Source of the DNA: Anthoceros angustus
Taxonomy: Eukaryota > Plantae > Anthocerotophyta
Reading direction: 5' to 3'
Assembly: GCA_010909165.1 (NCBI GenBank)
Contig: VJWM01000117.1
Coordinates: 806,001 to 870,000, forward strand
DNA: 64,000 nt
Shown here: piece after piece, positions 18,758 to 64,000 of the stretch
How positions within the stretch are numbered: the stretch's first letter is position 1
Layout: every line of letters begins with the position of its first letter
Translations under genes and position numbers: made by a program
The notes under the pieces: generated by a model
Databases searched by the model: none
The model's input: the letters and a program-made list of their open reading frames with translations, nothing else
Told to the model about the DNA's origin: nothing

Positions 18758-19430
18758 ACTTGAAGCAGGATGCCAGGCGGCGGTGTTGGGGCTGGAATTC
18801 CTGCATGCAGGGGACCACAACAATGATCAAGCGTGGCGGGGGCCAGAAGATCGTGTCAAGGCTGCTTCCAAGCAGACCCAGACATTTCTCATCTCTGCGG
18901 GCTCCGGTGGCCGAGAACCGCACAATAGGCGGTGAGTGTGCTGCCTTGTGGTGAGTGCTTCATGCTTTGCAGTCGTTTTTCTCGTCTCGGAATCTGATGG
19001 GTAGGAAGCTGGATTGCAGTGGAGCCGAGTCAGCGGGACGCGCTGTGGCGAAAATTCGTGGCCAACCCTACGCTGTGGTGGGACACCAGGTCGAACAAGG
19101 TATGCAGAGCTTGCCGTGCAACCTGGTGGAAGAGACGGGCTGGGCAGCGGTGGGCCTGATTTTTTGCCACCCTTGCAGCGCAGCCGCAGTTATCCTGACT
19201 TCGTGCACAGCGCAACCAGAGAGGCCTTGTGGGTCGATTCCCAACCTGCGTGGGTGGAGGAGGTTCGATCAGCAAAGATTTTGTCCGACCAAGCTGGATT
19301 TGTTGGCTCTCAGGATTCTGAAAGGTGACCCACTTTCCCATCCGCTTTCTGCATGTTTTGGTGATGGTAAACGTGTCTGGCAGCATGGTGTGGCTGCTAA
19401 AGTGTGTGAGGTTACCTTTCTTTCCTTTTG

Positions 19431-21302
19431 ATGACCACGGCCTCAAATCTTTGCAGGGTGGCATGGTGTGAGGCTCCTCTGGAGCTCGGAAGCTGGACCA
19501 AGCTCTGCGAGCAGGGGCATCTGAGGGAGGCAGTTGATGCATTGGACCTCCTAGTGCAACGGGTGTCGTTCGTTCCAGCATCTCTCTTCTACAATGTGCT
19601 CAAGGGGTGCATTGCAAGAAAGGATTTGGTGTCCGGCAGGCACGTCCATGCACTGTCGCTTAAATGTGGACATGAGTCCAACACATTTCTGGCCAACCAC
19701 TTCATCCGCATGTATTCCTCTCATGGGAGGTTGCAGGAGGCGATGCAGGTGTTTCACAAGCTGGCTGCACCGAATACCTTCACATGGTCCTTTGTCATCT
19801 TGGCACATGCAGAACATGGGCAGCCTGGTCGAGCCATAGAGCTGTACCATCAGATGATGCAGACGTCGAGTCTGAAGCCGGACAATCATGTATTCTCGGC
19901 AGTCCTGAAGGCATGTGTAGGTGCTGCGGATCTGGCAGCTGGCAAGCTCGTTCACGCTGATGTTCTAGGGAATGGGACGGAGCCGAATGTTTTCGTCTCC
20001 AACTGTCTGGTGGACATGTATGCAAAATGTGGCAGCTTAGTGGATGCTCGCCGCGTGTTTGATAGCTTGCCCACGAGAGATGTGGTGACATGGAATGCAA
20101 TGATATCTGGGTACACCCAGCATGGGCTTGGTCAGGAAGCCCTTGCCCTTTATGCCAGTATGCAAGATGAAGGTGTCACCGCTGCCACAAATTTCACTTA
20201 CTCGTGCCTTCTGAAAGCATGTGCGAGCGTTGGTGCATTGCAGCAGGGGAAGCAGCTTCACTTCCAAATCCAGGAAAGGGGGCTGGAAGGGGATGTGGTG
20301 GTGGGCAACAGCCTGGTGGACATGTACTCCAAATGTGGGAGCCTGGACGATGCTCGGAGAGTGTTCGACAGACTGCCCAGAAAAGATGTGGTCACTTGGA
20401 ATGCTTTGCTGAATGGCTACGGCCAGCACAATGCAGGCCAAATGGCAGTCAAGTGTTTCAGAGAAATGCAACAGCATGGGGTCGGGCCTGACGATGCCAC
20501 TTTCATCTGTCTGCTGGTGGCGTGCAGTCACCAGGGGCTGGTGACACAGGGTCAGCAGTATTTCCGAATGATGGTGGAAGACCATGGCATCACTCCTGCT
20601 GCCTGTCACTACAACTGCATGGTGGATGTTCTTGCGCGGGCAGGCCACCTGGACGAGGCCGAAAAGCTGCTGCTGGGTGTCCCATTCAACACGACTGTAG
20701 CAGGGTGGACATCCTTGCTAACTGCCTGCAGAAGCCACGGGGACGTCGACCGTGGCAGACGGTGCTTCGACCGCCTCATCCTACTGGAACCTCAGTATGC
20801 AGGTGCTTACGTCCTCATGTTGAACATCTATGCTAATGCTGGCAGGTGGCAAGACGTGGACAGCATCGAGAACCTGAGAAAGCTCACAGGTGCCTGCAAG
20901 AAGCCTGCTAGGGCCTGGATCGAGGTGGGGAGCAAGGTCCATGCATTCGTCGTGGGTGAAGAGAGGGACGACCTTTCCTCCAGACTGAAGAGTGCGAATC
21001 TGCAGCTGAAAGAGGAGGGAGGCCATGTCCCACATACAGACCTCGTGCTCAGGCCTGTGCCCGAGCAAGAGAAGGAAGATGCCCTGTGTGGACATGCCGA
21101 GAAGCTTGCTTTGGCATTTGGGCTGCTCAACACTGCTGATGGCACACCTTTGCTGGTAACGAAGAATCTTCGAATGTGTGATGACTGTCACAGTGGAACC
21201 AAGATCATGTCCCGGGTCGAGAAGCGTGAGATCATAGTGCGAGATGCTCACCGTGTTCATCGCTTTGTAGAAGGATGCTGTTCCTGTGGCGATGGCCACT
21301 AG
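19431..21302 (+). CDS. PLS-class PPR protein with DYW:KP deaminase-like domain (candidate U-to-C RNA editing factor)
   Basis: PLS repeats, E domain, KKPARAWIEV (KPAxA in place of the PG box), HAEKLA zinc motif, KNLRMCDDCH, ends CSCGDGH*. An upstream exon probably exists (donor ~19325, acceptor ~19456). Confidence 0.9.
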   Translation: MTTASNLCRVAWCEAPLELGSWTKLCEQGHLREAVDALDLLVQRVSFVPASLFYNVLKGCIARKDLVSGRHVHALSLKCGHESNTFLANHFIRMYSSHGRLQEAMQVFHKLAAPNTFTWSFVILAHAEHGQPGRAIELYHQMMQTSSLKPDNHVFSAVLKACVGAADLAAGKLVHADVLGNGTEPNVFVSNCLVDMYAKCGSLVDARRVFDSLPTRDVVTWNAMISGYTQHGLGQEALALYASMQDEGVTAATNFTYSCLLKACASVGALQQGKQLHFQIQERGLEGDVVVGNSLVDMYSKCGSLDDARRVFDRLPRKDVVTWNALLNGYGQHNAGQMAVKCFREMQQHGVGPDDATFICLLVACSHQGLVTQGQQYFRMMVEDHGITPAACHYNCMVDVLARAGHLDEAEKLLLGVPFNTTVAGWTSLLTACRSHGDVDRGRRCFDRLILLEPQYAGAYVLMLNIYANAGRWQDVDSIENLRKLTGACKKPARAWIEVGSKVHAFVVGEERDDLSSRLKSANLQLKEEGGHVPHTDLVLRPVPEQEKEDALCGHAEKLALAFGLLNTADGTPLLVTKNLRMCDDCHSGTKIMSRVEKREIIVRDAHRVHRFVEGCCSCGDGH

Positions 21303-22190: not shown

Positions 22191-24143
22191 CAATTCTTTG
22201 AGCAATTTGCTCTTCACATTTGTCTAGTGAGACACAAATGTTTTTTGTCTGATCTGAACTTTTTACCTGAATAACCAAGAGTGTAGCAGTAGTGTTTGAG
22301 TCATTTCAATACGTGATCGATCTCCTAACACAAGGTGTTTAATAACACAGGTTTGTGAGACCATTCCAGTACAACAGATGCCCAAGGCAGCTACCGGTGT
22401 CCTCACACCCTGTCATCCCGGAAGTGAACTCGGAGGTGTTGCAAGTTCGGCCTTCGGATCAAGACGTAGTGAGCCCCTTGCCCCCTTGGTTGAAATAGGG
22501 CTGAGAATTCTTTGGATGGTGGTTCATTGGTTAGGGGTTGTTTGTAGGACACTTGTTCGATGTGAGAACGAGTGGAGTATTGAAAAGCACAGCGATAAAA
22601 AGAAGCACGTATTTATTCTTTTGAGGCTTTAATATTTGATAGATCAATAAATAAGAAAGTAGGTTCGTATGGTGGACACGAAAATTGTAATCATGAGGGT
22701 GTTTACTTGTAGCACAATTGTGCCATGGGAGCAAGTGGTGTTATTGGAAAGCTCTTACACAAACGAGTATGTAGAGTTAGAAAATGAAAGTCATGTCTCA
22801 AACTTAGAAGTTGCACATTTCAGTGTTGTATTGATAATGTTGCAGTCTATTCACATCAAAGATGCTAAGATGACAATGGTGCTCAACCTCCACTTACAAG
22901 AACGTTGGATGTGTACCTTACCTCTCCTAAACCTAGAGGGGCCTCAAGTTAGTTTAGTGTGGTTAAAAGAAAGCCTCAAAAGGGGTCAGTCCCTGTTGCT
23001 TAGGGGTAGGGTGGTTTTCCATGCATGAGACCATACAGTACAAAACTTGCGTCACCTCAATTTACTTCACGCAACATGGTTTTAGTACTACTTTGTTGCT
23101 AAAAAGGATATTGAAACAATATTAAATTGATTTAGTTGTGTTTTTAGTAATACTTTGTTGTTGTTGCAATCAATTCACTATTGTCTCTATCTTCTTTTCA
23201 GCAATAAAGTAGTGTTAAAAACGATATGTCATCTAAATAGATTGAAATATCATCAATACAATACTAAAACATACAACTTTCTAAGTTCAAGATGCATTCA
23301 CGGAATCATTGCAAAAATCTTTGTTGCCCCGAGTCTTGTTCGATAATGACTTCATCTCCGAACAAGACTCTGGCCATCCTTCAAGCGTCCCGTGAGCTGC
23401 ATAATGCTTTTTCCGGTCTTCTCAAACACCTATCGCTTTTTAGTAAAAAAGATGACACCGTTCGTGACTATGACTCAAAGTTATCTTTCAATTTCCTTGG
23501 CTAGCAGGTGGTTCTTGTGGAAGATTGTGAATTTCGATAAAACTAAGAAGATAAAAGCTAACCTTCTATCTTGCAGATACAATCCTATTCTGTTAGATAC
23601 CTAGAATGCAAAATCTAATACCATCAAACGGCTGTCATACATCCAGGCATCTCGTCACACTCTCATATGACCTTGTTGTCGACCGACATTACCTTTCTGA
23701 AGTATATGAAGACTTGCAGCTTGTTTGTGGAAAAAAGCCCTGCAACTTGTTTCTAAAATAATATGGGTACATAGATCTAACCCTTACACCCTTCCCGCTT
23801 CGAAAGCACAAGCTGTGATACAGTCTCTAAATTTCTACCAAGGTGCTACTAAGGGGCATTATGTTCAGTTGTCCCTCCTCCGCCACGACTTCTAGTTATC
23901 TTCATTTTGTCTTCTTTAACAATCATATAAACAATTTGTTTGCTGCAAAGCCACAGAAACAAAAGTAAAATACTCTTGGGTGTCGGATTTCAAGGGATAA
24001 GGGAGGAGTGGACAACAATGGGTATGTTATCAATCAATTTGATTTCGCTATCTGTTCAAAACTCGAGGTTGGTTGGCACCTCATCCAAGTACTGATCCGA
24101 CCCAAGGATGCTTAACTGTGGAGTTCTTGTGTCCGAGCTATCT

Positions 24144-25250
<1,107 letters not shown>

Positions 25251-41545: not shown

Positions 41546-42555
41546 TGTGTCCGCGGTGGGGTAGCTTCTTTGTTTTCACGCTTGGGAGATTCACGGTTAG
41601 AAGGAGATAGCTGGTCATGGATTGTGGAAGTTACTGAATGTTTCCTGGGCCTATGTCTGCTTCACGTGGTTGCTCAAGTGTGACGTGCTTTGCATTTTAC
41701 AGTGGCGTGTGCCTGATAGATACTCCTAGGTCTGTTTGTTGTTGTGCTGCTAAACAGATTCATTGCAGCCCGCAGCGGAAGAACCATCTGCTGTTGTCAC
41801 TGCTTCTCCGATTGACTTGCCTTTTTTTGCATGTCCTCTTCATGGTTGTGGTGGAGTGAAGCTAGATGTGGCAGGTTCCATGTAGTAGCAACGGCTTCAC
41901 GGCAGTATCTGCCTCGTCCTGACAACATGCCGGTAGGTCAAGCACAAGGTGTCAATGCTAACTGCCCTGGCCATTCCAAGTTATTTCTGCTTTGACCTGT
42001 GAAACGCTTGACAAGCAACCTCACTTCAGGTGTGTAAAGATGATTAGCACACCCCCTCCCGGTGCACCGGTCTTGAACCAGATTGTGTGCTGTGTGCATT
42101 CGATGGGAGTGGATGACTTATTTTTTGTCACCAGAGCGGGAGGCTCTGATAAGTGTGCGAGGGTGAGTTAGTACATCACAGCTTCGCATTTCCACTCTTC
42201 TGGTTTGGGTGGTGTTTCTAGTGCTGTGGCGTATTAGGCTTGGGTGGAGACTGATATCCTGGCCCAGAAGGGACTATGCAGGTATGGAAGGCATCCACAG
42301 ACGGCAACTCATTCCATGAGCTGGGCAGGCTTGACGGTCAACTCAGCAGAGTCAATTCCAAGCTCAGAAAACATTGCAAATGAGTCACGTAGTTATAGTG
42401 CATCAATAATGCAAGGTTTTCTGAGCTTTGATTGACTCTGCTTAGTTGTTGCAATCATGGAGTACTACTGGGTTTGCTGTGTGTTGTTGGACAGAATACT
42501 CCACGATGCTTCATTTTTGGCTGCAGTTCTGAGGGATGATTTTGTCCTGGGATGT

Positions 42556-43615
42556 CAGGATTCTGAAAGGTGGCCCGCTTTCCCATCCGCTTTCTGCATG
42601 TGGTGCTGATGATGAAGGTGTCTGGCAGCATGGCGTATGAGGTTTCCTTTCTTTGCTTTTGATGACCATGGCCTCAAATCTTGCAGGGTGGCTTGTTGTG
42701 AGGCTCCTCTAGAGCTCGGAAGCTGGACCAAGCTCTGTGAGCAGGGGGCATGAGGGAGGCAGTTGATGCATTGGACCTGCTGGTGCAACGGGTTTTGTTT
42801 GTTCCACCATGTCTCTTCTACAATGTGCTTAACAGGTGCACCGCAAGGAAGGATTTGGTGCTCGGCAGGCACGTCCATGCACTGTTTCCTAAATGTGGAC
42901 ATGAGTCCAACACATTTCTGGCCAACCACTTCATTCCTCTCATGGGAGGTTGCAGGAGGCGATGCAGGTGTTTCACAAGCTGGCATGTGGAAGCCGAATG
43001 TGTTGGTCTCCAACTGTCTGGTAGGTGTGTATTCAAAATGTGGAAGCCTATTTGATGCTCGCCGCGAGTTTGAAAGCTTGCCCACGAGAGATGTGGTGAT
43101 ATGGAATGCAATGATCTCTGGGTACACCCAACATCGGCTTGGTTAGGAAGCTCTTGTTCTTTATGCCAGCATGCAAGACGCCACTGCCGCCACAAATTTC
43201 ACTTACTCGTGCCTCCTGAAAGCGTGTGCGAGCGTTGGTGAATGCAGCAGGAAAGCAACTTCACTTCCGAATCCAGGAAGCAGCCTGAAAGGTGATTTGG
43301 TCTCCGGGACTGAAGAGTGCAAATTTGCAGTTCCAAAAGGACGGAGGCCATGGTCCCACATACAGACCTTGAAAAACTTGCTTTGCCATTTGGGCCACCA
43401 GACACTGCAGATAGCACACCTTGGCTCGTCACTGAACGAATCTTCGAATGTGTGATGGAACCACGATGTCTCGGGTTGAGAAACGTGAGATGATAGTGCG
43501 AGATGCACACCATGCTTATGAGCATGTTTATCGCTTTGTCGTGAATTCACGACCTGGGACCACCACCCTCAATCGGACAATCGTGGAAGGATGCTGCTCT
43601 TGTGGCGATGGCCAC
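42556..43615 (+). pseudogene. Deleted DYW:KP PPR paralogue (copy C); additional 3'-end echoes to ~44055
   Basis: Colinear with 19312-21300 including the putative intron; LREAVDALDLLVQRV, LPTRDVVIWNAMISGY, KREMIVRDAH..GCCSCGDGH; many deletions and stops. Confidence 0.88.
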
Positions 43616-45299
43616 GAGGCTTGTCTTGCTCCGTTGAACGAGCTGAAGTGTCTTCTTGTCTTTTCGGGCCCTCCCCCCCCCTCAAATCTATGCTTCGCGC
43701 TTCCGGGGGGGCTGAATTCAAAGAAAGGAAGAAAAACGGAATTATGCTAATTGGAACTATTCGACGAGTCGTGTGTCAGCTGGACACGAGACCGTCGCGT
43801 CGGTTGTCTCCTTCCCTTTGTGGCAGACAGCGCCACAATGGCCGCAGGAACAATGTGAGCACGGAAGCCCGCGGCTCGATTGTGACGAGCGCTGGCCACT
43901 CTTCACCTACGCGGCTCTGGCCTGCCACTGCTGGAACGCGCAAGCAGCTCTATCGTGTTATGTGATTGTTCCTTGCTTTTCCGACAGAGGAGGGAGCGTG
44001 TAGCTCACGATTCTCAGCTGTTGCTGCTGCAAGCATCTTGGACAAGCTCAGGAGTTGTCGGAAGCGCAGGAAATTGGATGTGGCCTGCTCTGCCGGCCTG
44101 CTTTTGCCAAGAACTTGGTTACGGACAGTTACGGTTGCAGGAGCGGTGTGGTGGAATGCTCGGATAGACATTACGCTTCCGGGCTAGGTTTTGGTTTCCA
44201 TGTGTTCTCAGTCTTTGAATGTCTGTGCTCCACCCTGTGGCTTCCGCTCTGATGCCGCATCCGCACCTCACAAGTCATTCGGGAGTTAAACGAGTGCAGT
44301 TCTGATTGTCTTTGTGGCCTGTCTGTTCCAAGTGATTCCTCAGGATCTTTGTGGTGAGAGTTGCGGGGTGTAGCTCAGGGACTGTGGTGTACTGATGGTC
44401 GAGTGGTCGCGAGCGATTCCGGTGTAGACACTGGTTCTTGTTCTGATTCGGTCAGAGAGGGATTTGTCGTGCGTGCATGTCTAAAATTATGTTTCCTTCG
44501 CACCTGGTGAGGTAGGTAGGCCTTGGCTTGGCATTTGGATCGGTTTTTTCGGTGGCTGGCTCTTTCGTCCCTAGCAATGGAGCTGAGCGGAATTTCTCGG
44601 GCTCAGCTCCCTCGGTGCAGGACTTATGTTATTCCAGCTGGCACTGAAGTAGGGGTACCTTTTGTGGCAAAGCATACAGGAAACATATGCAAAGTCGGCC
44701 CTCATAGAAACTCATTTGAAAAACATATATGAGGACCACCAGCACGCGCGAGACGACAAGGCTCCTCCCGCTTTGTACGTATTCTTCTGCCTTCAAATGT
44801 TCAAGGATTCAGAGTTACGCTTCTATAATGTCCGAGTCCTTGTCACTTATTTGTGGTCACAACGATAGTATTTGGGTTATAGATCCATCGTCGAGCTGAT
44901 TATGAAGTTCTGGGAGCATATTGAAGTTGTTTGCTCACGCTGACTCCATCTTTATTCAGAAAACTTACAACAGAACCGGGTTCAGACCCATGAGCCTTGA
45001 TCAAGAATGACAGATGGGACAGAAGGAGCTCTCGAGCACTCTGAGGTGGTTCTGCAAAAGCACAGGGCTTAGCCGCTGACTGATGTCCGTTGCACACATT
45101 ACTTCATGCTAGGAATCTGAATCACGTGTCGACTCACTGGTCCATCTAACCTAAGCATGTTAATTTTACCCACATTTGCTCTTCACATCTGTCTACTGAA
45201 TTTGAAGAGTCATGTTCACCATGGAGTAGTAGGAGGTGAGTCGTTTCGATACTTGATCCCATCTTCTAACACAGTGTGTTGATAACACAGGTCTGTGAA

Positions 45300-46726: not shown

Positions 46727-46809
46727 CACGCCCGAATCATGGTGGTGCGGAGAGTGGTCCTCCCTTTGGCAGGGAAGACCACTCTCCGCACCACCATGAT
46801 TCGGGCGTG
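46727..46809. repeat. Perfect 33-bp inverted repeat (fold-back of the Roco P-loop coding sequence)
   Basis: CACGCCCGAATCATGGTGGTGCGGAGAGTGGTC (46727-46759) and its exact reverse complement (46777-46809); a further 5 bp stem and 5-nt loop lie inside. Confidence 0.95.
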
Positions 46810-48668
46810 GAAACGACAGATAGCCGCATCAAAGTTCCAGCTCGGCCAAGTTCGACTGAAGGGAAAAATGTGTCATGCTCGGAGATGGATGTCTTCCGGC
46901 ACCGGTACCGGTACCGGTACCAGAACGGAAGGCATAGAAATCGAGGTGTTGCGCAACGACCGTGATATGCAAGTTACCATCTGGGATCTGGCTGGACAGG
47001 CTCAGTACCGAGCTCTGCAAGACTACCTCTTTCGGGGTACCCGAGGTATGCAACCGATTGAGTGCTGTTTTGACTGCCTGCGTAGCCCAACATCCAGCTC
47101 AACCGATTGTGAGGAAACAAACAGAAACTTCAAACTCTGTTCCAAAAGGAGCTGCCGAGTTTCCAGAAACTTGGTGGGGTTCAAGATAGGGGGGAATGAT
47201 TGGAAGCCATTCTTGCGTATTTGCGTGATGTGGGTAGTATCATCTGTTTCCAAGATATAGATGTTGTGGTGATAAATCCACACTGTATCAGTCACAATTT
47301 TTTAGGGCGACTCATTCAGCTTCTAACCAGAGCATGTCTCCCGTCTACTAGTAGTTTGTCGCATTCCTCAGATGGATTTGTTGCAAGGATGGATTTCTCA
47401 AAGGCACGCAAGCGGAGGGGATTGAAAGGCAACATCTGGTATCATTGATGACCACTCTCAAGTTATGCTACGAAGAGGATCGGACTCGACGTGTCGGATT
47501 CTTTGTTCTCCTCACCTTGGACGACGGTAATGGTAACGCTCTTCATGGGAGACGACAGTTGACCCGGAGAACTGATGATACAGCAAGCAATTACAACTAC
47601 CTCGGAAGGAGGTTACAGTGCCTTGACAAGACGAAGACGTTCCTTGGTCCAGGCTTTTTTCCTAGATTCCGAGTACGATAACTACCAACATGTCTTTGTT
47701 TTAATGGTATGTGTGTCTTCAACCTGTTTATTGACACTCTGGAGGTTTGCATATTGCAGGTCTGCCTCCGAAAGGACTTGTTTACTGGACGCCATGGCAT
47801 GCAACCTCATCAGTATTGTATCGAACGCAACCTCATCAACTTCTTGTGTGATGGTGTGGTTGTGTTTTTGGAAAGCAGTGGGGATATCGGAGAGGAAACC
47901 GGAGACATCGGTGACCATATTGATATTCTGGTGAGGTCATCCAAGAGCAGAGATGAAACTATCCAGTTTCTCAAGGAACATGTGGTTGCAAAGCTGAAAT
48001 CTTTTTGTGCTTCCCCTGAAGGCAGCCCGGGAATCGAGCTTGTGGAAGGAATTATCAGGACCGAGTGTGTCGAAAACCTCACACTCTGTATCTACCGGCA
48101 TAACCAGTCAGTGCTAATGCAGGATTTGCTCAGGCGTGGTTTTGCATACCAACAAGACTGTACAGGGGAGATTTTCTCCTCATTGGATGTGGCCGACTTC
48201 AGATGGTCGTGAACAGAATGTCCTGAAGCCTTTTTGGAGAATGCCTTTGAGGGAGTAAAGAGCTCTTAAGTGCTGGTGAAGTCTTGGATGTCTTGCAAAA
48301 GCGACGAATAGATCTCCTTCAAACCAATCTCCAACATAGATGCAGCTGCAGAGCAAGTGCTGCCTACAGAGAAAGTGGTGCGCGCACAACAAGACATTCC
48401 AGTTCAAAGGTCTTGGTTTGCCTACCTACGACGTACTATATCCCTCCCTGGAACTACTCACTCGGAGATGGCGGATCAACTGTTGGAAACCATCAACCAA
48501 GGGATAAGACGGTTGAAGCATAACGTGAAAATATGGTGGAGACAGAGGTGAAAGCAGTGGGAGTCAAAGTGGATAGAATTGGCGAGACTTTGCAACGTAT
48601 CCAACGTGAGATCAGCGATATGAAGACCTGGCAAGAAGATACTCTACAATTCTTGCTTTCTAAGATGC
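46760..48668 (+). pseudogene. TORNADO1-like Roco (Roc-COR) paralogue, 5'- and 3'-truncated with internal deletions
   Basis: PLAGKTTLRTTM, TEGIEIE, WDLAGQ, YLRDVGSIICFQD..INPH, YLGRRLQC, EGIIRTECVENL; colinear with 58380-60690. Confidence 0.85.
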
Positions 48669-50529
48669 ACTTTACTACCTTCATTGACAAGTTCTCCAAC
48701 TCACTTCCTCGGCTGTAACGAAAATTCATGAACCGACAAGAAATATTTAGGCTACACAATTGATGGCAGTTGTCCATGTGGGGATCAGCTTTGGGAGCTT
48801 GTGGACAAGGGGTCGGGCTTCCTTGATCCGGAGGCAGTGGGAACTGGCACGCTTCAGCCTATGTCTGGGGTCGAATGGGAACCGTGCTCTCTGTACGGAT
48901 GCTCTTCGTCTTCGCATGGCATAGGAATCTATCTAAACTGACATCAGTCGTGGTGGTGAGGAAATGTGTACGGAATTCAGGCAACATGTAGCCCGAATTC
49001 GACCTTTCCTGGAAGGCTCACTTGCTTCACCCACACGAATAGACTGCTTCTACCCTTTCTTCACCCATACGATTAGACTGCTTCAACCCTTCCTTCACCC
49101 ATGCACGATTCTGCAGGCATCGGTGAACTGCCTGGAGAAAGACAGTTGGAATGACAAGGCCAAACTCTATATATGGAGGATGCGAAGTGGAGGTGGATCA
49201 GGCCCTTAGCAATCAATGGAGCAAAGCTATTGCTCTTCCTGGCCAAGACTGGACTACATGCGACTGCCCTCCTCGGCACCCACCAAATACACAGGCACGC
49301 CTTCCAGCTGCCACAGACATTCGTAAGGCCCAATTAGGTCCAGAGCAGTGAAGCCCTGGAACACAGGGATGCCGATGCTTGCCACCTTCACACTGTCGCC
49401 CATCGCATTGCTCTTGGAACAGCTGCAGCCTGGATGGAAGTTGGGAAGAACTGAAATGGGATTTGAAAGGCGTGGAATGGAGTGGAATGGATAGCCCTGG
49501 TAGCCAGGCTATATGGCCACACGCCTGCCTGGGGGATGGATACTATAGCCTTATGCTTTGATGGAGTCACATCCTGACGAAGTCATATCCTTGCGAAGTC
49601 CCATCCCGAAGAAGCATCCCTGATTGACGTGTTCCAGAGAAGGACACAGGCAGGTGGCCCAGCCTTGCATTATTGCTGGACATTGACGAGTTCAGTCATC
49701 ACTGCGTACATCACAGCCCGCCAGTTCGCACTCTCTCGTTCCTTGCAAGTACTTGTCAGGCCAGTGCCAGCTTGCTTTCAAGCTCACCTGTTGTGGACGG
49801 CATCTCCGTCATGGGCGCAAGTCTGTGAATACCGAATTTTAAACTATGTTTTAGAAACGTGATGCTTTCTCCAGGGCACGCAAGAAAACGTGCATGATAT
49901 CGTCAACATGTGCCGGGCAATGACTCTTGATGCCTACCCAACCTTGACAAAGCTGTCATTCCTATGGCCCCTTGACAGTTTCTTATCACCTGTTCAAATC
50001 TTGCCCAGGTAGAGAAGACTTCAAACCACCTCAGCCTCCCACGTGAATGGAGCTTCCTTAGTGTCTTCCAGTGCCATCCCCGTACTGCCCGGTATGCTGC
50101 AGGTTAGTTATCATTAAGGAAGTAGACCTAATTGTTGGAAGCATTTTTGAACATTGACGTTAGGTTAGCTGAATGTTTGAAGACATGAGATTGGCAGTTC
50201 ATAAACGACGAGGGTAGAGGCATAGGGAGGTGTGTAGGATACTCTCTGCCCACATACACGATGACAACGACTAATTTCAAGCCGTATTACATCTTGAAAA
50301 GTAGAATGGTAATGGAAAATACCTTAGTTTTGTTTGATAATAATTTGGTAATAGGCTTGGTAATAGTTCGCATGGGCGATTTGTTAAGACATTGGATAGG
50401 GATAGATCCACAACAGGCAAGCCTAGATGAAAGGCTGTGTCAAGTGTTTTCCAAAACGAGCCACCGAGCAAGTAGAACCTAGAGACTAGGTGCTGGGAAG
50501 TGGAGGACTAGGTGCTGGGAGGAGAAGCA

Positions 50530-50715: not shown

Positions 50716-50789
50716 AAGGCTTTCCCCCCTTTGTTGGCGCTGGCATCCTGGAGGAGTTTCTCAAGGAACATGTGATTGTAAAGTTGAAA

Positions 50790-51808
50790 TCTTTTTGTGC
50801 TTCCCCTGACGGCAGTCGCACCACCGTCAGGAGAAGCACAAAACGCTCTCAGTTCTGCAACGCTCTCAGGAGAAAATCGATTGTTTGGTCTTACTCGATT
50901 ACCCATACCAGACCTCATCAAAATATCAACACGATCATCGACGTCCCCTGTGTCCTCTCCAAATCCTGCAAATGCCGAAGTTAGGCTGCAACACACGACG
51001 TTTTAGTTGCTCCCGTCAGAAATTGCACCTTATGCAGTTGGAATCTGTCGGCCATTTGATCCCTTAGCAACGGCTGCAAAAGATTCTTCAGAGCAATCCA
51101 TGCCTCTTGCACGGGAGTGTTCTGGCTCGCAGCTGGTCAAAGGCCGCAGCGAGAGAAACCGGTCCATCCAAGCTGGTGGAAGGGTCGGGAACCGCATTCC
51201 CAATGCCGGCAGCCACATGTAGGCCAGCTTTCACTAGGAAAACCAAAACCTTGATACCTATGATTGCTATGGGCCTGATCCACTTCCACTTCGCATCCTC
51301 CAATGTCAAGTCGAATCCAGTTTGGCCCTGCACGATGGGATTCCCAAAGATGTTTTCGCACATGAAATGGAGCTTAGCCGCTTTGCCCACACGCACCCCT
51401 GCAATCAACCTCTGTGCTAGATCCACGTCTGCAGTGGTGATGTAGGGACGTCTGGGTATCTGACTGCTTTCTAATTCTGCAGAGAAATTCATAATCTCAT
51501 CCATCTTAGAAAGCAAGAATTGTTGAGTAGCTTCCTGCCCAGCCTTGATAGCGCTAATCTCATGTTGGATAAGTTGCAAAGTCTCGCCAATTCTATCCAC
51601 TTTGACTCCCACTGCTTTCACCTCTGTCTCCACCATTTTCACGTTCTGCTTCAAATCTCTTATCCCTTGATTGATGGTTTGCAACAGTTGCTCCCCCATC
51701 TCCGAGTGAGTTGTTCCAGGGAGGGATATAGTACCCACGCTGACAAACCGAGACGTTTGAACTGGTGCGTCTTGTTGTGCGAGCACCCTTTTCTCTGTAG
51801 GCAGGACT
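50790..51808 (-). pseudogene. Inverted Roco C-terminal fragments (coiled coil + TRN1-like tail)
   Basis: ORF 51088-51786 nearly identical to 60490-61130 (LLQTINQGIRDLK..IPRRPYITTADV..KLHFMCENIFGN); 50790-50985 carries DDRVDILMRS..LRAFCASPDG. Confidence 0.85.
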
Positions 51809-51809
51809 T

Positions 51810-52548
51810 GGAGTTGAACTTATGGAAGGGATCATCAGGAGTGAGTGTGTAGAGAACCTCACACCCAGTATCAATCAGTTCTAACAGTTTGATGAAGTGC
51901 CTTCTTGAGAATCAGAAAAGCTTTCCAGGGCAGATTTCCTCCGGCTTGGATGTTCCCGATTATCAATGGTTCTGGCCAGCGAGGCCTGAAGCCCATCTAC
52001 CCAGTGCCTTTGAGGAAGCCAGGGACCTCTTCAGGATGTTTTGCAAGAGTGGCGGACAAGTCTATCCCTCCGTGTAACAAGTGACCCTTTTATTGGAAGA
52101 AAACGTTACTCGCAGCAATCGCCTCAGTGCAGAAGCTACTATATGGTAACGAAAGCGTGGAAGCAGGCAATCGGAGCGGTTGCGCAATGACTGTAAGCAT
52201 GGAAGAAGACAGACCTGGAGGAGCGGTAGAGGGCGACGTGAAGCTCTTCTCCAGACCTTCAAAGTTTAAAACTGATGTTGTGGTGAACGATCCTAAGGAT
52301 CTCACAGCAGAAGCAGTTGTGGAGACGAAGCTTTCAGGGATGTCGAGAAAGGCACAAACTTTATCATAGCTTTGATGGAAGCCATCATTGAGGGCTCTCA
52401 AACGGAAGATGTGCTGAGCATTCTAGCAATCGTGATTGGCAAGATCACGAACATGGAGGGCGTGCACAAAACCGGAGCAGGATACGAGAAGAAATTCCTG
52501 TGTCCCGAGTTGCGGAGCACACTAACTAGAATGCTACACTGGTCTTAA
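51810..52548 (+). pseudogene. Roco COR-distal segment followed by a caspase-like domain (p20 start + p10), internally deleted
   Basis: GVELMEGIIRSECVENLTP..SAFEEARDL..QDVLQEWRTSL (Roco), then RSGCAMTVSMEEDRPGGAVEGDVKLF..DVVVNDPKDLTAEAVVET, then an open frame 52330-52548: AFRDVEKGTNFIIALMEAIIEGSQTEDVLSILAIVIGKITN..LCPELRSTLTRMLHWS*. Confidence 0.7.
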
Positions 52549-53009
52549 CCATTCCATGCTCCTCACATGCCTGGCCAGCGTAAGTAGGGTGCGGCCAGGG
52601 TCTACCGTAATTAACCAACCTGTAATGCCTTCAATCAAGTGTCAGATATCGTCTTCAGCGACACACTGTTGGTGCATCAAACTGCTTGTGATAGGGTCTT
52701 CTCACTTCTCCTTTTCTACGCATTCCTGTTTGGCAAAGAGAGACGTCTCACAGCGTCCTTGTTTGGATGAACAGATGATGGCTCATAAAGGCTATGGGTA
52801 GGGAGGGCAGAACGTGCGTGTTTGTACAGCTGCAGCGGTTGGTTTCAAGAAGCAAGTCCAGATTGGCGGTCTTCTGGTTCACTGATTTTACATCCTTTGT
52901 AGACCGCCAGGATGTATTTTTCATCTTCCCGACCAGGCAAAGCTGGGACAGGATGTCCTTCACTCAAATCGCGTCTGCAGCTCCTGCCTTCATGTCACAA
53001 ATGGCTTCT

Positions 53010-53190
53010 CTTCGACGTCTCAGCCCTGGACGGTTGTCGGTGCCTCGACAAGCATTAATGATAAAACATAAAACACCTTTGGCTTGTCTGCCGCAAAACT
53101 GTGTCCAGTGATGGACCCATCAGTGGAAACAGTTACATCTCTGGCAAACAAGCCAAAGGTGTTTGTCATTATTGCTTTCGAGATCGCTAT
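53010..53190. pseudogene. Caspase-like active-site fragment in fold-back arrangement (copy 1)
   Basis: Minus strand DKPKVF..IINACRGTD (NACRG at 53056-53042); plus strand TSLANKPKVFVIIAF at 53135-53180. Confidence 0.65.
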
Positions 53191-54244
53191 CTCCATCCAA
53201 TACCGGTGCGGCAGCTCGAACCCTGTATCTCTTGACAAGTACGGCTGATAAATTTCACCAACCACAAATCTATCCTGTCCAGGCAGAAGAGTATACATCA
53301 GGGAGGATACATGGGGGCTCAGTTTCAGGGGCTCTTAAGACACCAGATTACGGTGACACCAGATCACGGTCAGACTGGGTTGGAAATAGATCTGCTGTCT
53401 GTTTTGGTTTGTGCAGTGAGCAGTGAGCAGTGAGCAGTGAGCGTGGGAGTTGGCAAGTCCTCGAAGGGAGTTACAGCCAGACATGGGTTCATTGGAACTC
53501 CAAGTCCATTGTAACTTGAGTCCTTGACCGGAGCTATGCAATGGCATCATGTGGAAATGAAGAGATACAAGAGGAATTCCTAAGGCGTCCTACCGTGTCC
53601 AGTAGGCAATCCCGTCTTCGACAAGCCGAACGTGCGGAGGAAGAGATCTTATCTAGAGCAGGACCCTTTCCACTGGGAGCCCTTAGCGGACGCCAGTCAC
53701 AAATTTAGGGTTTATTTTACCACAAGTTGGACGACCGGACTGGCTTTCCTCTACTACTTAGGTGGAATCGTGGACGCTGGCAACGCTTTCCATGCCAGTG
53801 GGTCTCGGAGGAGGAGCTTTTCCCGGTCTTGTGGGTTTCCAAGTCTGGTCACCCTCGGCACTCGCGCTTTGTGCCCTTCCCTGCGTCCGGAGCTAGGATG
53901 GCATGTGGTTGGTTAGACTGGCCGCCGGGCTTTTTGGGGATGCTGGGTATGAGCTGCTGCGCTGTTTTGCAACACACCTAGGTGTGCTCGTCTTTCCTGC
54001 TCGTACAACTTGCAATTGCTAGCAAGCTTCAAGGAGTGTAGGACATAGTGTAATGCTCTTGAGACGTGTGCTTGAACATGCTGAAGAAGGGCAGCTGTAC
54101 GTAGAGTGAATGTTCCAGAGATGTAGAGAGCTTCCTCTTGACTGCAGCATTAGGGTTATCAGCCGTACTTGTGAAGAGATGCAGGGTTCGAGCTGCCGCA
54201 CATCGAGAAAGCGATCTCGAAAGAAATGATGACAAACACCTTTG

Positions 54245-54595
54245 TCGAAAGCAATGATGACAAACACCTTTGGCTTGTTTGCCAGAGATGTACATAACTG
54301 TTTCCACTGATGGGTCTATCACTGGACACAGTTTTGCGGCAGACAAGCCAAAGGTGTTTTGTTTTATCATTAATGCTTGTCGAGGCACCGACAACTGCCA
54401 AGGGCTAAGACGTCGAAGAAACGAAGCAATCTCGTCAGCAAGAGAGCTGGGAAGGTTCGACCCCTGCTTTCTGTGAGTGACTGTCTCGTCGTTTTCTCAA
54501 CCAGTCATGGGAGAAGTATGTTTCAGAGATGCCGAGAAAGGCACAAATTTATCCTCGCTTTGGTGGAAGCCATCGTTGAGGCCTCTCTAGTTGGC
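54245..54595 (+). pseudogene. Caspase-like fragment: catalytic Cys motif, linker and p10 start (copy 2)
   Basis: DKPKVFCFIINACRG (NACRG at 54372-54386), ~30-codon linker, SDCLVVFSTSHG(E)VCFRDAEKGT.FILALVEAIVE with two compensating frameshifts; homologous to 52330-52395. Confidence 0.72.
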
Positions 54596-55379
54596 AGATT
54601 GTGGAGGACAGCGGCTCCAAGCTGATGTGTTTTGTAGCTGGCAGTTTGATTAGCACGTATGGGAAGTCCAGCAGCACGGTTGATGCACAGCCGGTGTTTG
54701 ACACTGTCATCGGAAAGCACTGATCGCAGGCTGCACCTGTGAAGCGCACAAAAAGGGTGGTTTTTCAGGTGTTAGCTCGTGGAGGGTAGGAAGGAAAGAA
54801 CGTGTGAGTGGCAGGGCTGTAGGTGCTTGAGCTGCTCGAAGCAAGTCCAGATTTTCGGTCCTCTGCTTGAATGATTTCTAGATCTTTTGCACACTGTCAG
54901 GATGTGTGTGTTCCATCTTCCCGACCGGGCAAAGCTGGGAAAGGATGTCATCACTGAATGGCGTCTGAGGCCCTGCAGGATACACTAGACAACGCGGAAA
55001 ATCGCTCACGGCCATCTCCGATATCCAACTAACTGAGATTTTGCTTTCTTCGAAGGTGAGGAAGGGAAGGTGTGTTTCTATCCTTTCTATCCAGGGTGAT
55101 TTGGTTGTGGAGAGCGTCAGCAAATGCATAAAATTGTCAAGCTCGAAGGGGCTGCAGCCTACACAGACAAGTGCATTTCCCTTGACACTTGAGCCTCCCT
55201 TGACACTTGAGCCACGTGCGCTTAGATCGGTACTTAGATGGGGTGCCTGAAGGGAGTGGATGCCCTTGGTGCAAATAGCTTAGGCACACCAAGGTACAAG
55301 TTGTTAAGTACCATGACGGAAATCCAGTCTTTGGTGGAGTTAAATACAATTCTTCTTCTTCTTCCTGTGGGTCCTCTTG

Positions 55380-56343: not shown

Positions 56344-57037
56344 GGCGTCCAGATTGTCACACTTCCGACGCATGGCCACCAGACAGGAGCCGATAAACTA
56401 ATCATCATTCTCGGATATAGTTATGAACCATCGATGTCAAGGACGTCCATATTCAGCAACAACAACAGCAGCAACTTTGTGCAAGTCCACTGGAAATCTA
56501 CTGCAAAGGGTCCCTCCGACTGAATTTGGGAGAAAACAGTACTCATACCCTGCCATTCACTTGTGGAGAAACAGCATGGGTTATATCCGCAATATCATTG
56601 CACTTCCCTTCCCCATACGCCGACTTTGGAGAGCGTGTTGTTCCCTTTCACAGGCTGCCAGACCCTGATGAGCTTAGATTCATGAAAGATCATGTTATCG
56701 AAAATTACAAGTAAAGGGTTTCTAGGCTGGATCCAGTTTCCATGGACACCCAACCCAACCCAACCCAGCCCATCATTCATCACAGGGACCGTGCACGGAG
56801 CCGTTTCCCGTTCCGTTCCGGTGTCCCGATGATCTCATGACCGGACAAATTCCATTCCATTTACTTATTTTAGCATGTTTAAGTTTGGCCAGTTTCGCCG
56901 TCCATGTGGGAAGTTTCGCTGCGTGGGGCCTGCCTGCCTGCCAGGGCTGAAGGCCGCGGGATGTGGTGTGGCCTGGAGGAGCTCAGCACCTGGCTGGCCC
57001 TCATTCCATTCTAGCACTTCGCATAGCAGAGCAGAGC

Positions 57038-60000
57038 ATGGCGGAAGAGCATGAGGCGGAGGATTGGCGCGCGCTGCCGGTTAAGCTGCAGCAGCTGCTG
57101 CGAGATCTGGGCCGGAATGCCTTGTCCCGTCTACCCTGGTCGCTGCATCATGAAGAGTATGGCCGCTACTTCAGTGGGCAAATCCGTGGTGATGAGGGAA
57201 GGCACTGGCGAGTGCGCAAGCGGGTGTTGACAGCCATTGCCAACTGCCGCAGGCTCGCGTCCATCGTGATTGACCACAGGTGGGCCATCGGCTTGGATCG
57301 GGAGGATGAAGTGTCGGTTCTGTTGGGGGGCCTGGCGTCCAACCCTTCCTGGATTCTGATGGCTGTGAAGGTTTTGGAAGGCAGGCGGCTTGCGAGGCTC
57401 TGGGCCAGCTTGTTGCATCCAGTCGCAGCTTACGAACACTTCAGCACCGAAGTTGGGCTTGATGCCGCGGACTGGGTGCCCTGGCCAAAGGCTTCAACAA
57501 GGATTCTGTCCTGGAGTTTGGTCTTAGACGGGAACGAGGTGGGAGGTGCTGAAGGGGCACAGCACCTGGCCCGCATTCTGGCCACGGCTCCCCGTCTCAA
57601 GGATCTGTCACTGAAAGACATCGGCATGGATGTGGCGGGAGCCCAGTGTATTGCAAATGCTCTTCCGCTCTGTGCCACGCTCCGGTATCTGGCGTTGGAT
57701 GATGGCGTTGCATTGCGGGGTCCCATTCCCGGCGGCCTCGGGCCCATGGGCACTGTGCTCAAACTTGCTTTCACCCGCGCGGATGAGGATGAGAATGCCT
57801 CCATCTCTGGCGTCACAGCTTCTTTGGATATCTCGAAGGATGGGGAGGCAGGCCTGGCAGACGCCCTGGCCGGAATGCTGCGCACCAACGATCGTATCGA
57901 GAGCTTGTCACACCACTCCATATGCTCTCATCCACGGCCTGGACGGGTTACGCCACAACTCCACCATATCTGAACTTCGTCTCCGGGACTCAGGCCATCA
58001 GCTGCGACGGATGTGTGGATGCGCCTTGTCCAGTTGCTCCCGGAATGCAAAGCACTGCGTGTCCTGGACTTGATCGCTGGGCCACGCCTCGTTCAAGAAA
58101 GAGTTGCTGAGATCCTTGGAGGGCAACGCATCTCTGAAAAGCTCGACATTTCTTCTGGGACGCCCTGGATCATGACATGTTTAGAGACTTGATGAACTGT
58201 ATTCAAGTCAACAAGACGTTACGGAGATCAACATCAGGGACAACATGGGAAGCGGAAGGAAAGGACGCAATCATCAATGCAGCCTTGGCAGGCAATGCCA
58301 CTCAAGAGGCTTACTGGCCTTTGCTCGTGGGCAGGCAAGGGCCTGTGATGCCCAAGGCTGGGCGCCTCTTCCTGTGCGGTGCCCTTTGGCAGGAAGACCA
58401 CTCTCCGCACCACCATGATTCGCGCATGGAGACGACACAGCCGCATCACTCAAGTTCCAGCTCAGCCAAGTTCCAGCTCGACTGAAGGGAAAAATATTTC
58501 GTGCTTGGCGACGGATGGCTTCCGTCACCGGTACCAGAACGGAAGGCATAGAAATCGAGGTGTTGCGCAACGACCATGATATGCAAGTTACCATGTGGGA
58601 TCTGGCTGGACAAGCTCACTACCGAGCTCTGCAAGACTACCTTTTCCGACCTTCAACCAAGCATGTGTCTTCCTGTTTGCGTTCAGCCCATTTGATGATC
58701 GGAAACGGAAACCTCCCCAACTGCATCCGCCTAATCTGCGTGATAACCTGCAGGACAGGTTCAGAAGGAGCTTGGCGTACTGGCTTAGGTTCATCAACTC
58801 CAATTGTCGCAACGTGGGCTCTACTTTGCCTCAAATATTTGTGGTGGCAACTCATGTGGATAAGATGAAGCGTTCTGATGCTCAAGCTCTACCGGATCTC
58901 CTACAACCCGTTCTGACACAGTTGGCCACCGAGTTTCAGCAGGTTGTTCACGTGCAAACAACACCACTCTTCTCCATGGACGCTCGATCTGCCAAGAGTG
59001 TGAAGCCCTTGCTGGACGCACTCATGGAATCGTTTCGAGCTCTATTTGCAACTAGACTGTTTTGGGTACCCGAGGTATGCAACCGATTGAGTGCTGATTT
59101 GACTGCCTGGGTATCCCAACATCCAGCTCAACCGATGGTGAGGAAACACCAACTTCAAACTTTGTTCCAAACCGAGCTGAAGAGTCTCCACGAAGGTGGG
59201 GTTCAAGCTGAGGGGGAACGATTGGAAGCCATTCTTGCCTATTTGCATGATGTGGGCAGTATCATCTGTTTTCAAGATACAGATGTTGTGGTGATAAATC
59301 CACACTGGATCAGTCACAATTTTTTAGGGCGACTCATTCACCTTCTAACCAGCATGTCTCCTAGAGGTTTGTCGCATTCCTCAGATGGATTTGTTGCTCA
59401 AAGTCTGCTTCATTCCACCTTGGATGAGATTCTCAGAGGCACACAAACGGAGGGGATTGAAAGGCAACATCTGGTATCATTGATGACCACTCTCAACTTA
59501 TGCTATGAAGAGGATGGGACTCGAGGTGTCGGATTCTTTGTTCCGTTCACCTTGGACGACGGTAAAGGTGACGCTCTTCCTGGTAGACGAAAGTTGAACT
59601 GGGAAACTGCTGATACAGCAAGCAATTACAACTACCTCGGAAGGAGGTTACAGTGCCTTGACAAGACGAAGACGTTTCTTGGTCCAGGCTTTTTCCTAGA
59701 TTCCAAGTACGATAACTACCAACATGTCTTTGTTTTGATGGTGTGTGTCTTCAACCTGTTTACTGACATTGTGGAGGTTTGCGTATTGCAGGTCTGCCTT
59801 CGAAAGGATTTGTTAACCGGATTCCATGGCATGCAACCTCATCAATATCGTATTGAACGCAACCTCATCAACTTTTGTGTGATGGTATGGTTGTGTTTTG
59901 GAAAGCAGTGGGGATATCGGAGAGGACACCGGAGACATCGGTGACCATATTGATATTCTGGTGAGGTCATCCAAGAGCAAAGATGAAACTATCGAGTTTC

Positions 60001-61304
60001 TCAAGGAACATGTGATTGCAAAGTTGAAATCTTTTGTGCTTCCCTGAAGGCAGTCCGGGAGTCGAGCTTGTGGAAGGAATTATCAGGACCGAGTGTGTCG
60101 AAAACCTCACACTCTGTATCTACCGGCATAACCAGTCAGTGCTAACGCAGGATTTGCTCAAGTGTGTTTTGCAGACCAACAAGACTGTACAGGGAGATTT
60201 TCTCCTCAATGGATCTGGCCGACTTCAAATGGTGGTGGCCAGAATGTCCTGAAGCCTCTTTGAGAGTGCCTTTGAGGGAGCTGATGAGCTCTTAAGTACT
60301 GGTGAAGTCTTGGATGTCTTGCAAAGGCGACGAACAGGTCTCCTTCAAACCATATCCAACATAGATGCAGCTGTAGAGGAAGTCCTGCCTACAGAGAAGG
60401 GTGCTCGCACAACAAGACGCACCAGTTCAAACGTCTCGGTTTGTCAGCATCCGACGTACTATATCCCTCCCTGGAACAACTCACTCGGAGATGGGGAGCA
60501 ACTGTTGCAAACCATCAATCAAGGGATAAGAGATTTGAAGCACACCGTGAAAATGGTGGAGACAGAGGTGAAAGCAGTGGGTGTCAAAGTGGATAGAATT
60601 GGCAAGACTTTGCAACTTATCCAACATGAGATGAGCGCTATCAAGACTAGGCAGGAAGCTACTGAACAATTCTTGCTTGCTAAGATGGATGAGATTATGA
60701 ATTTCTCTGCAGAATTAGAACGCAGTCAGATACCCAGACGTCCCTACATCACCACTGCAGACGTGGGTTTAGCACAGAGATTGATTGCAGGGGTGCGTGT
60801 GGGCAAAGCGGCTAAGCTGCACTTCATGTGCGAAAACATCTTTGGGAATCACATCGTGGAGGGCCAAACTGGATTTGACTTGACATTGGAGGATGCGAAG
60901 TGGAAGTGGATCAGGCCCTTAGCAATCAACGGTATCAAGGTTTTGGTTTTCCTGGCTGGCCTACATGTGGCTGCCGGCATTGGGAATGCGGTTCCCGACC
61001 CTTCACCAGCTTGGATGGAGCGCTGTATCTCACTGCGGCCTCTCTGGACGCAGCCTGTCCCATTTAAATCTGGACCTGACAGGTCCATCGCTGGAGCCAG
61101 AACATTCCCGTGCAAGAGGCATGGATTGCTCTGAAGAATCTGTTGCAGCCGTTGCTGAGGGATCAAATGGCTGACAAATTCCAACTGCACAAGGTGCAAT
61201 ATCGGAAACGGCAGGATGGAGGACGAGGAGTGGCATGGGTTTGCGAACGGTGTATGCGGAGGGAATTAGACAAGTCTATCAGCCGCTCTGACGGGAGCAA
61301 CTAG
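57038..61304 (+). pseudogene. TORNADO1-like LRR-Roc-COR (Roco) gene, near full length with many frameshifts (pseudogene or poor consensus)
   Basis: RNI-type LRRs (LVLDGNEVG..GAQHLARIL, LKDLSLKDIGMDVAGAQCIANAL); Roc G1 LFLCGA.LAGKTT, G2 TEGIE, G3 WDLAGQ, G4 VATHVD; COR YLHDVGSII..INPHWIS; intron ~59707-59791; coiled coil; TRN1-like KLHFMCE..HIVEGQTG and VAWVCERC tail. Confidence 0.85.
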
Positions 61305-62720: not shown

Positions 62721-63077
62721 TGAGGCGGATGCTAGGATGGCGGCAGGAGTTAGGATGGCGGCAGGTGCACGGCCGGATTTTTGATCAAGGAAGGACGATT
62801 TCTCTGCCTAAGTCTGTTTCCTTCAGGAGTCCTGCGGGTGCCCCAGGGAAACTGTCGTGACCTGGCGGGACCCTGTCTACTCAGTTTACAGGGTCCAGCC
62901 CTGAAACTGATCCCTGATGTATCCACTTCTGGCTGGGTAGGATAGATTTTTGGTTTGTGAATGTTCTAGTGATGTCGTGAGCTTCCTCTGGACTGCAGAA
63001 TTAGGATCAGCAGCTGTACGTGTCATGAGATGGCAGGGTTTGAGCTGCTGCACGGTACTGTACGAAGAAAGTGATCC

Positions 63078-63222
63078 CGAAAACATTACTGACAAACACC
63101 TTTGGCTTGTTCGCAGATACGTAACTACATTCACTGACGGAGGCATCACTGAATACAGTAATCTGCAAACAAGCCGAAGGTGGTTTATCATTAATGCTTG
63201 TCGAGGTGACCTTGTCACAAGT
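63078..63222 (+). pseudogene. Caspase-like active-site fragment in fold-back arrangement (copy 3)
   Basis: NL(A)NKPKV.FIINACRGD with compensating 1-nt indels (NACRG at 63193-63207); the opposite arm reads SANKPKVFV on the minus strand. Confidence 0.65.
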
Positions 63223-63225
63223 GGG

Positions 63226-64000
<775 letters not shown>

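Follow-up and report, generated by a model that had tools for sequence, protein, structure and literature searches.

The Roco gene cluster

The window, by which we mean the whole stretch of 64,000 nucleotides analyzed here, is plant nuclear DNA with mTERF-like and PPR genes, one of which has E and DYW domains. At 19428-21302 lies a KP-type PPR-E-DYW gene that ends in DGH, and a decayed paralog of it is found at 42555-43750. Hornworts and ferns are the plants in which such factors have been linked to U-to-C editing, and an editing factor of this type would fit a hornwort. Trinucleotide simple repeats occupy about 600 bases at 24043-24700. A decayed cluster of Roco genes spans 46.7 to 63.3 kb, and it is within this cluster that the segment of interest is located, at 51810-52548 on the plus strand. 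The neighboring Roco gene that serves as the reference for its layout (56951-61206, plus strand) consists of Roc, COR, a coiled coil, and a tail, with frame breaks, and is 89% identical over 1.6 kb to a second Roco copy at 46762-49268. In the neighbor, Pfam recognizes both Roc (E 0.0014) and COR-A (E 6e-10), and a bacterial Roco structure (3dpt) is matched with an E of 2e-5. The frame at 56951-57970 is repeat-like in appearance, with no Pfam match, and the tail of these neighbors presumably resembles the C-terminus of TRN1.

The segment itself is a pseudogene from which no protease is made: its 5' half is missing, at least four frame breaks interrupt it, and it lacks the catalytic His and Cys. 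Neither the N-terminal LRR nor the Roc-COR tandem is present. What is left of these parts is one piece with homology to the end portion of the neighbors' COR region, and no single open frame runs from COR into an intact caspase. We aligned contigs of four short-read runs, from its own organism (organism A) and from a second one (organism B), to 51500-54700, and these contigs confirm its frame breaks.

Plus-strand COR homology begins exactly at 51810, and the junction letters place the break at 51809/51810. On the other side of the break, at 51016-51809 on the minus strand, lies an inverted Roco tail (the coiled coil and tail of a TORNADO1-type neighbor), which is 89% identical to 60380-61206. 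This third copy of the tail ends at the relic's break and is context only, lying outside the caspase gene. Further upstream, 50754-51020 holds a COR piece that is 93% like the neighbors and self-folding at 50785-50851, followed by reversed COR and tail pieces; it forms a chain of template-switch-like joints, and on the Roco coordinate scale position 50817 is collinear with 51810.

The COR-region piece of the relic (51810-52070) is 72-74% identical to the Roco neighbors, which are 94% identical to each other, and it differs from them by two small frame-shifting deletions, near 51880 and 52034. Its homology to the neighbors through 52070 is significant, with none of 1000 shuffles scoring equal or better. 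Given the difference between 72-74% and 94% identity, the piece comes from a different, diverged Roco subfamily and was therefore not acquired from the neighbors. Over the linker that follows (52071-52168), which has a frame break near 52123, the homology is weak: it is borderline at 52071-52150 (54 of 1000 shuffles), fades at about 52145-52150, and is absent beyond 52150. The point of loss coincides with the start of the neighbors' coiled coil, which bears out the claim of the earlier note that this copy changes to caspase-like sequence where the others enter the coiled coil. The same note had described the piece as a homologous segment of distal COR. The homology stands, while the label "distal COR" is positional only, because no piece tested had a Pfam match to COR-B.

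The caspase-type domain and its deletion

The caspase small subunit (p10), with a pocket arginine codon at 52336 and the stop, occupies 52324-52548 on the plus strand. It is contained in an open frame of 83 codons from stop to stop (52297-52545), which ends in HWS ahead of the stop at 52546-52548. The match of this frame to Pfam C14 is weak (E 0.035) and covers positions 170-232 of the 233 in the profile. Against a profile built from 120 animal caspases the frame scores 25.1 bits, compared to a maximum of 5.7 in 3000 shuffles, and it reaches 95% in hhalign (E 3.2e-8). With profiles made from animal caspases only, it ranks first of the 2388 frames in the window (E 1e-7 and 1e-6). It aligns to caspase-3 over 72 residues with 26% identity and no gap, and its Atlas neighbors are eukaryotic caspase clusters at 0.93. 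A single-sequence structure model of p10 alone had a pLDDT of 58.6 and no Foldseek match. On the strength of the profiles and alignments, we identify the last 74 codons as an animal-type caspase small subunit, register included, in agreement with the original reading of a missed 72-residue frame as p10.

The start of the large subunit (p20) is assigned to 52169-52318 from its position and motifs, namely the first strand, an Arg at 52211, and DLT. Taken alone, this piece scores no better than shuffles (387/2000) and reaches 0.1% in hhalign, and the read-through of the p20 start, joined by placing an X at each of two frame breaks and scored by a local script only, is likewise no better than shuffles (277/3000). 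Comparing the p20 piece in Atlas, and single pieces with the PDB by phmmer, was uninformative. The paralog ends at the p20 start, translated by hand, read KRRGLAM and GLAMIMSM. Two organism-B paralog contigs have 4 extra bases at 52227, suggesting that the earlier reading EGDVKLF is out of frame. The proposal that caspase sequence begins here thus fits by place and by short motifs, is not upheld statistically, and appears to lose EGDVKLF as one of its motifs.

Some 42 codons separate the pocket arginine codon at 52211 from the one at 52336, whereas the two arginines of animal caspases are 139-148 residues apart. About 100 codons are therefore gone, and with them the inter-subunit linker, the Cys of NACRG, and the catalytic His, and the junction of this internal deletion lies at 52318-52323, where a DNA contig covering 52050-52384 bridges it ungapped. 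Of the two arginines, that of p10 is supported by alignment and that of p20 at 52211 by motif only, in a piece that is itself non-significant. Downstream of the stop, the 3' flank (52549-52987, plus strand) is common to a second caspase relic and to the organism-B paralogs; 52796-52987 is 76% identical to 54784-54976, and paralog contigs cover 52320-52735 and 52621-52784.

The second caspase relic (54245-54590, plus strand) supplies most of the parts missing from the first, the His region excepted. A hairpin copy containing NACRG comes first, then a linker, then the beginning of p10, DCLVVFSTSHG, followed by FRD, with frame breaks along the way; within it, the NACRG copy runs via the linker into the p10 start and body at 54340-54590, and 54510-54587 is 85% identical to 52321-52399. 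It matches caspase profiles with E-values of 3e-4 and 6e-3. The catalytic Cys motif (Q/N)ACRG, deleted in the first relic, is present in three nearby paralogous relics, all of which keep FIINACRG (3 matches where 0 are expected). No catalytic His-Gly in its proper context was found in 44-64 kb of the window. We considered DCLVVFSTSHG at 54479 as a catalytic His motif and rejected it, since its downstream context (FRD, GT.FI) is that of p10; the SHG at 54503 is the p10 start, and organism B reads SPG there.

Metacaspases have an acidic pocket and a D.CHSG-type motif. When the motifs were compared by eye, neither feature was seen in our pieces, which instead read NACRG, and p10 aligns ungapped to caspase. 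These observations support a small subunit that is, as far as its motifs tell, of the caspase rather than the metacaspase type. Whether such a domain would cut is a separate matter. It might be a caspase-fold adaptor or decoy in a genuine Roco fusion family, comparable to cFLIP or to inactive bacterial effector caspases, as could be argued from the His motif being in no piece, from the Asn that replaces the usual Gln before ACRG, and from the inactivity of about 70% of the caspase domains that occupy one effector slot in bacteria. However, the pieces retain the Cys motif and, as far as motifs tell for p20, the two pocket arginines, and many invertebrate caspases combine NACRG with an intact His motif, and we consider a non-cutting role improbable.

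Paralogs, hairpins, and the probable family

The relic is reproduced in the short reads. An organism-A DNA contig (X1) covers 52050-52384 with 2 differences and no gap, and a contig from the same sample (X2) covers 51810-52384 with 7 differences and 1 gap. Since these contigs reproduce the junctions, the order COR-linker-caspase, the deletion, and the breaks after 52050 are genuine, and the relic is real. The recurrence of the deletion, together with the short spacing of the pocket arginines, substantiates the earlier description of a deleted relic without His and Cys. Upstream of 51810, 57 bases of the X2 contig differ from the window; the inversion joint is thus unconfirmed, and it may be peculiar to one strain or due to assembly. 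Between the window and the organism-A run that matches it best there are also fixed differences of about 1% (at 52330, 52460, 52515, and 51841), which reflect either another strain or consensus errors in the window.

Could the whole structure be an artefact of assembly or of contaminating animal DNA? The absence of the 51810 joint from X2, whose first 57 bases differ, would fit the former, and the fact that the best protein matches are animal would fit the latter. Assembly error was rejected as the cause of the deletion, since the short-read contigs carry it along with the relic's other internal junctions. Animal contamination was rejected as well, in view of the plant PPR-DYW genes in the window, the identity to animal caspases of just 26%, and the many paralogs in two organisms. 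We therefore regard an artefact as very improbable.

Paralogs of the relic preserve parts of what it has lost. Contigs from organism A retain the p10 start deleted in the relic, with loose ends before 52333 that read FSTSHGQQS when translated by hand. From organism B, contigs cover the COR piece at 51866-52031 with about 20 differences in 166, and others match the linker. Of these, which have loose ends at 52124 and at 52181, the ones ending at 52181 extend into the first strand of the caspase, reading GLAMIMSM. A joint from 53170 to 54455 connects the KPKVF arm with the start of p10, which is undeleted and reads DCLVVFSTSP, and a joint from 54511 to 52331 connects that start with the body of p10, while a 688-base contig has 156 additional bases upstream of the deletion point. 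No single contig spanning COR to caspase was seen among the organism-B contigs.

The order of the pieces, the caspase-type p10, and the deletion are thus directly visible in the relic, and the paralogs retain the p10 start that it lacks. Because the paralog contigs keep this start and organism B has the same COR subtype, a Roco-caspase family is likely. In principle, a stand-alone or otherwise fused caspase-type gene could have been joined to a stray COR fragment by a local accident, in which case the domain would be real and the fusion not a family trait. The cluster does contain many template-switch-like joints, one of them just 360 bases upstream at 51810, the linker homology is weak, and no intact fusion was retrieved. 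Such an accident would, however, have to explain a COR piece unlike those of the neighbors, the relatives of the COR piece, linker, and caspase start in organism B, and a change-over that falls at a domain boundary, and we give it a low probability. The joining of COR to caspase is most likely a family trait rather than a single-locus event.

Taken together, 51810-52548 is probably the 3' end of one member, now dead and internally deleted, of a multi-copy LRR-Roc-COR-caspase family of plants. This family would be built on a Roco chassis of the TORNADO1 type, with a domain of the caspase type replacing the coiled coil and tail of the sister genes. Against the family reading stand the heavily rearranged surroundings, with their fold-backs and inversions, and the lack of an intact gene or protein in any collection searched, the catalytic His region never having been seen. 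The earlier proposal of a family fusion with an intact parent is accordingly sustained for the join, by the diverged COR subtype and the contigs, and not for the intact frame, of which no example was retrieved.

In the search for such a parent, phmmer with p10 against 1.84 billion representatives returned one spurious bacterial repeat protein, and word searches with the Roc-COR frame and p10 gave no match. Only animal caspases were found among the named matches of a scaffolded caspase alignment search, and scans of metagenomes, genomes, and viruses yielded invertebrate NACRG caspases or chance matches, none of them resembling the window pieces. Given the limits of length and word sharing, these blanks do not prove absence. 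Loci L007-L054 (JAAUXW and JAAUYA contigs) represent a large invertebrate caspase expansion in which NACRG replaces QACRG.

Every NACRG copy in the window forms an arm of a fold-back hairpin, and the hairpins consist of DNA that encodes the caspase active site (KPKVF...IINACRG). Copy 1 is found at 53045-53185 on the minus strand (z -11.0), copy 2 at 54245-54385 on the plus strand (z -8.4), and copy 3, with the same NACRG arm, at 63065-63206 on the plus strand (z -6.0). A 22-base block starting with U and antisense to the KPKVF codons is invariant in the three hairpins, and letters resembling the hairpin loop are present in organism B too. The hairpins may be small-RNA genes that arose through inverted duplication and target the family, or else repair scars. 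Elsewhere in the cluster, where the first Roco copy of the window begins, a Roco P-loop piece is covered by a near-perfect fold-back of 36 pairs (46727-46809, z -14.5). Right after hairpin copy 3, 63230-63533 is a broken, intron-poor piece that resembles methionine aminopeptidase 2.

A present role for the relics can be imagined on this basis, in which the cluster is kept as a small-RNA locus whose hairpin-derived miRNA or siRNA, from caspase and P-loop DNA, restrain the Roco-caspase family. This concerns what the relics do now and is compatible with the Roco-caspase family as their origin. Three hairpins with z-values of -6 to -11, an invariant arm despite diverging loops and flanks, and the loop-like letters in organism B all speak for it. 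However, no Rfam family was found at threshold for the hairpins, and fold-backs also form as repair scars, of which the cluster has several. We consider a small-RNA locus rather doubtful.

A possible receptor-protease and its known relatives

The intact parent may have been a sensor, switch, and protease in one protein. Leucine-rich repeats would sense a ligand, and the nucleotide cycle of Roc would switch the COR dimer. The caspase domain starts about 33 codons after the last clearly COR-homologous block, so a COR dimer would pair two caspase domains. Initiator caspases are activated by dimerization, and the two tethered domains might be brought together and activated in the same way. With both pocket arginines kept, as the motifs suggest, cleavage after Asp would be expected, unlike in metacaspases. 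A role in a defence or cell-death pathway is suggested by the expansion and decay of the cluster and by the bacterial systems. Roco proteins do dimerize, via the C-terminal half of COR (PMC4104024; PMC6337361), as the earlier note stated, but a GTP-driven order of events does not follow: a bacterial Roco homologue is a dimer with GDP or empty and a monomer with GTP (PMC5714945). A sequence of GTP, then dimer, then activity can thus not be assumed, and if the plant protein resembled the bacterial one, it would be dimeric when empty or bound to GDP, with activity possibly following hydrolysis instead of GTP loading. We put this mechanism forward tentatively, with slightly less than even confidence.

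The relic copy is dead, and its value is that of a witness to the family. A caspase-type domain that bears a putative Asp-pocket signature, occurs in many copies in two sets of plant data, and is placed on a dimer-switching GTPase allows a direct test of the statement that plants have no caspases, and the Roco-caspase family is a candidate receptor-protease in early-diverging plants. It is conceivable, though we lean against it, that a non-seed land plant, probably a hornwort, has an expanded set of single-protein LRR-Roc-COR switches for immunity or cell death carrying active, Asp-specific caspases of the animal type, restrained by a microRNA derived from the active site. If true, such a family of active plant caspases would overturn the view that plants have no true caspases. 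That view is current: a 2026 review describes plants as being without true caspase orthologues (PMC13272413), and in a survey that compared the N-terminal domains of NLRs between plant lineages, caspase comes up solely in connection with animal CARD domains (PMC11218826). In the papers searched, which cover little of the subscription literature, there is no description of a plant TORNADO1-type Roco with an animal-type caspase.

The layout as such is not new, contrary to the claim that LRR-Roco-caspase proteins are undescribed. In bacterial LRR-AP-GTPase(Roc)-COR conflict proteins, caspase is among at least 24 C-terminal effectors found after COR (Kaur et al. 2021, PMC8195603), and one genome can have several LRR-Roc-COR paralogs with differing effectors (PMC8195603). 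The domain order is the same here, with caspase in the variable slot after COR, whereas the chassis is of the land-plant TORNADO1 type and the p10 matches animal caspases. The TORNADO1 chassis may thus once have offered a slot for exchangeable effectors, as the bacterial Roco proteins do. TORNADO1 itself, with which the neighbors share Roc and COR-A, is a developmental gene without a protease, in contrast to the expanded and decaying cluster with a swapped C-terminus described here.

Among eukaryotes, brown algal and other SAR ROCO proteins of group 3 are LRR-ROC-COR proteins that end in a peptidase and are candidate immune receptors (PMC11378527). They are likewise Roco-proteases, but their peptidase is IPR009003 and not caspase. 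We take IPR009003 to be the trypsin-like clan. Plant metacaspases belong to the same C14 clan as caspases and also have p20 and p10 parts, so the distinction between the two rests on motifs and on the Arg-lined pocket. The p20/p10 division by which the earlier note set caspases apart does therefore not separate the two. Metacaspases cut after Arg or Lys (PMC13272413), and none of their distinguishing features was seen in the relic pieces. Finally, the pieces share with animal caspases such as caspase-3 and -7 the p10 register, the pocket arginines (that of p20 by motif only), (Q/N)ACRG, and the PK.F motif, but differ from them in the identity of about 26%, in having a Roco module instead of a death-fold prodomain, and, in the relic itself, in the loss of the catalytic His and Cys.
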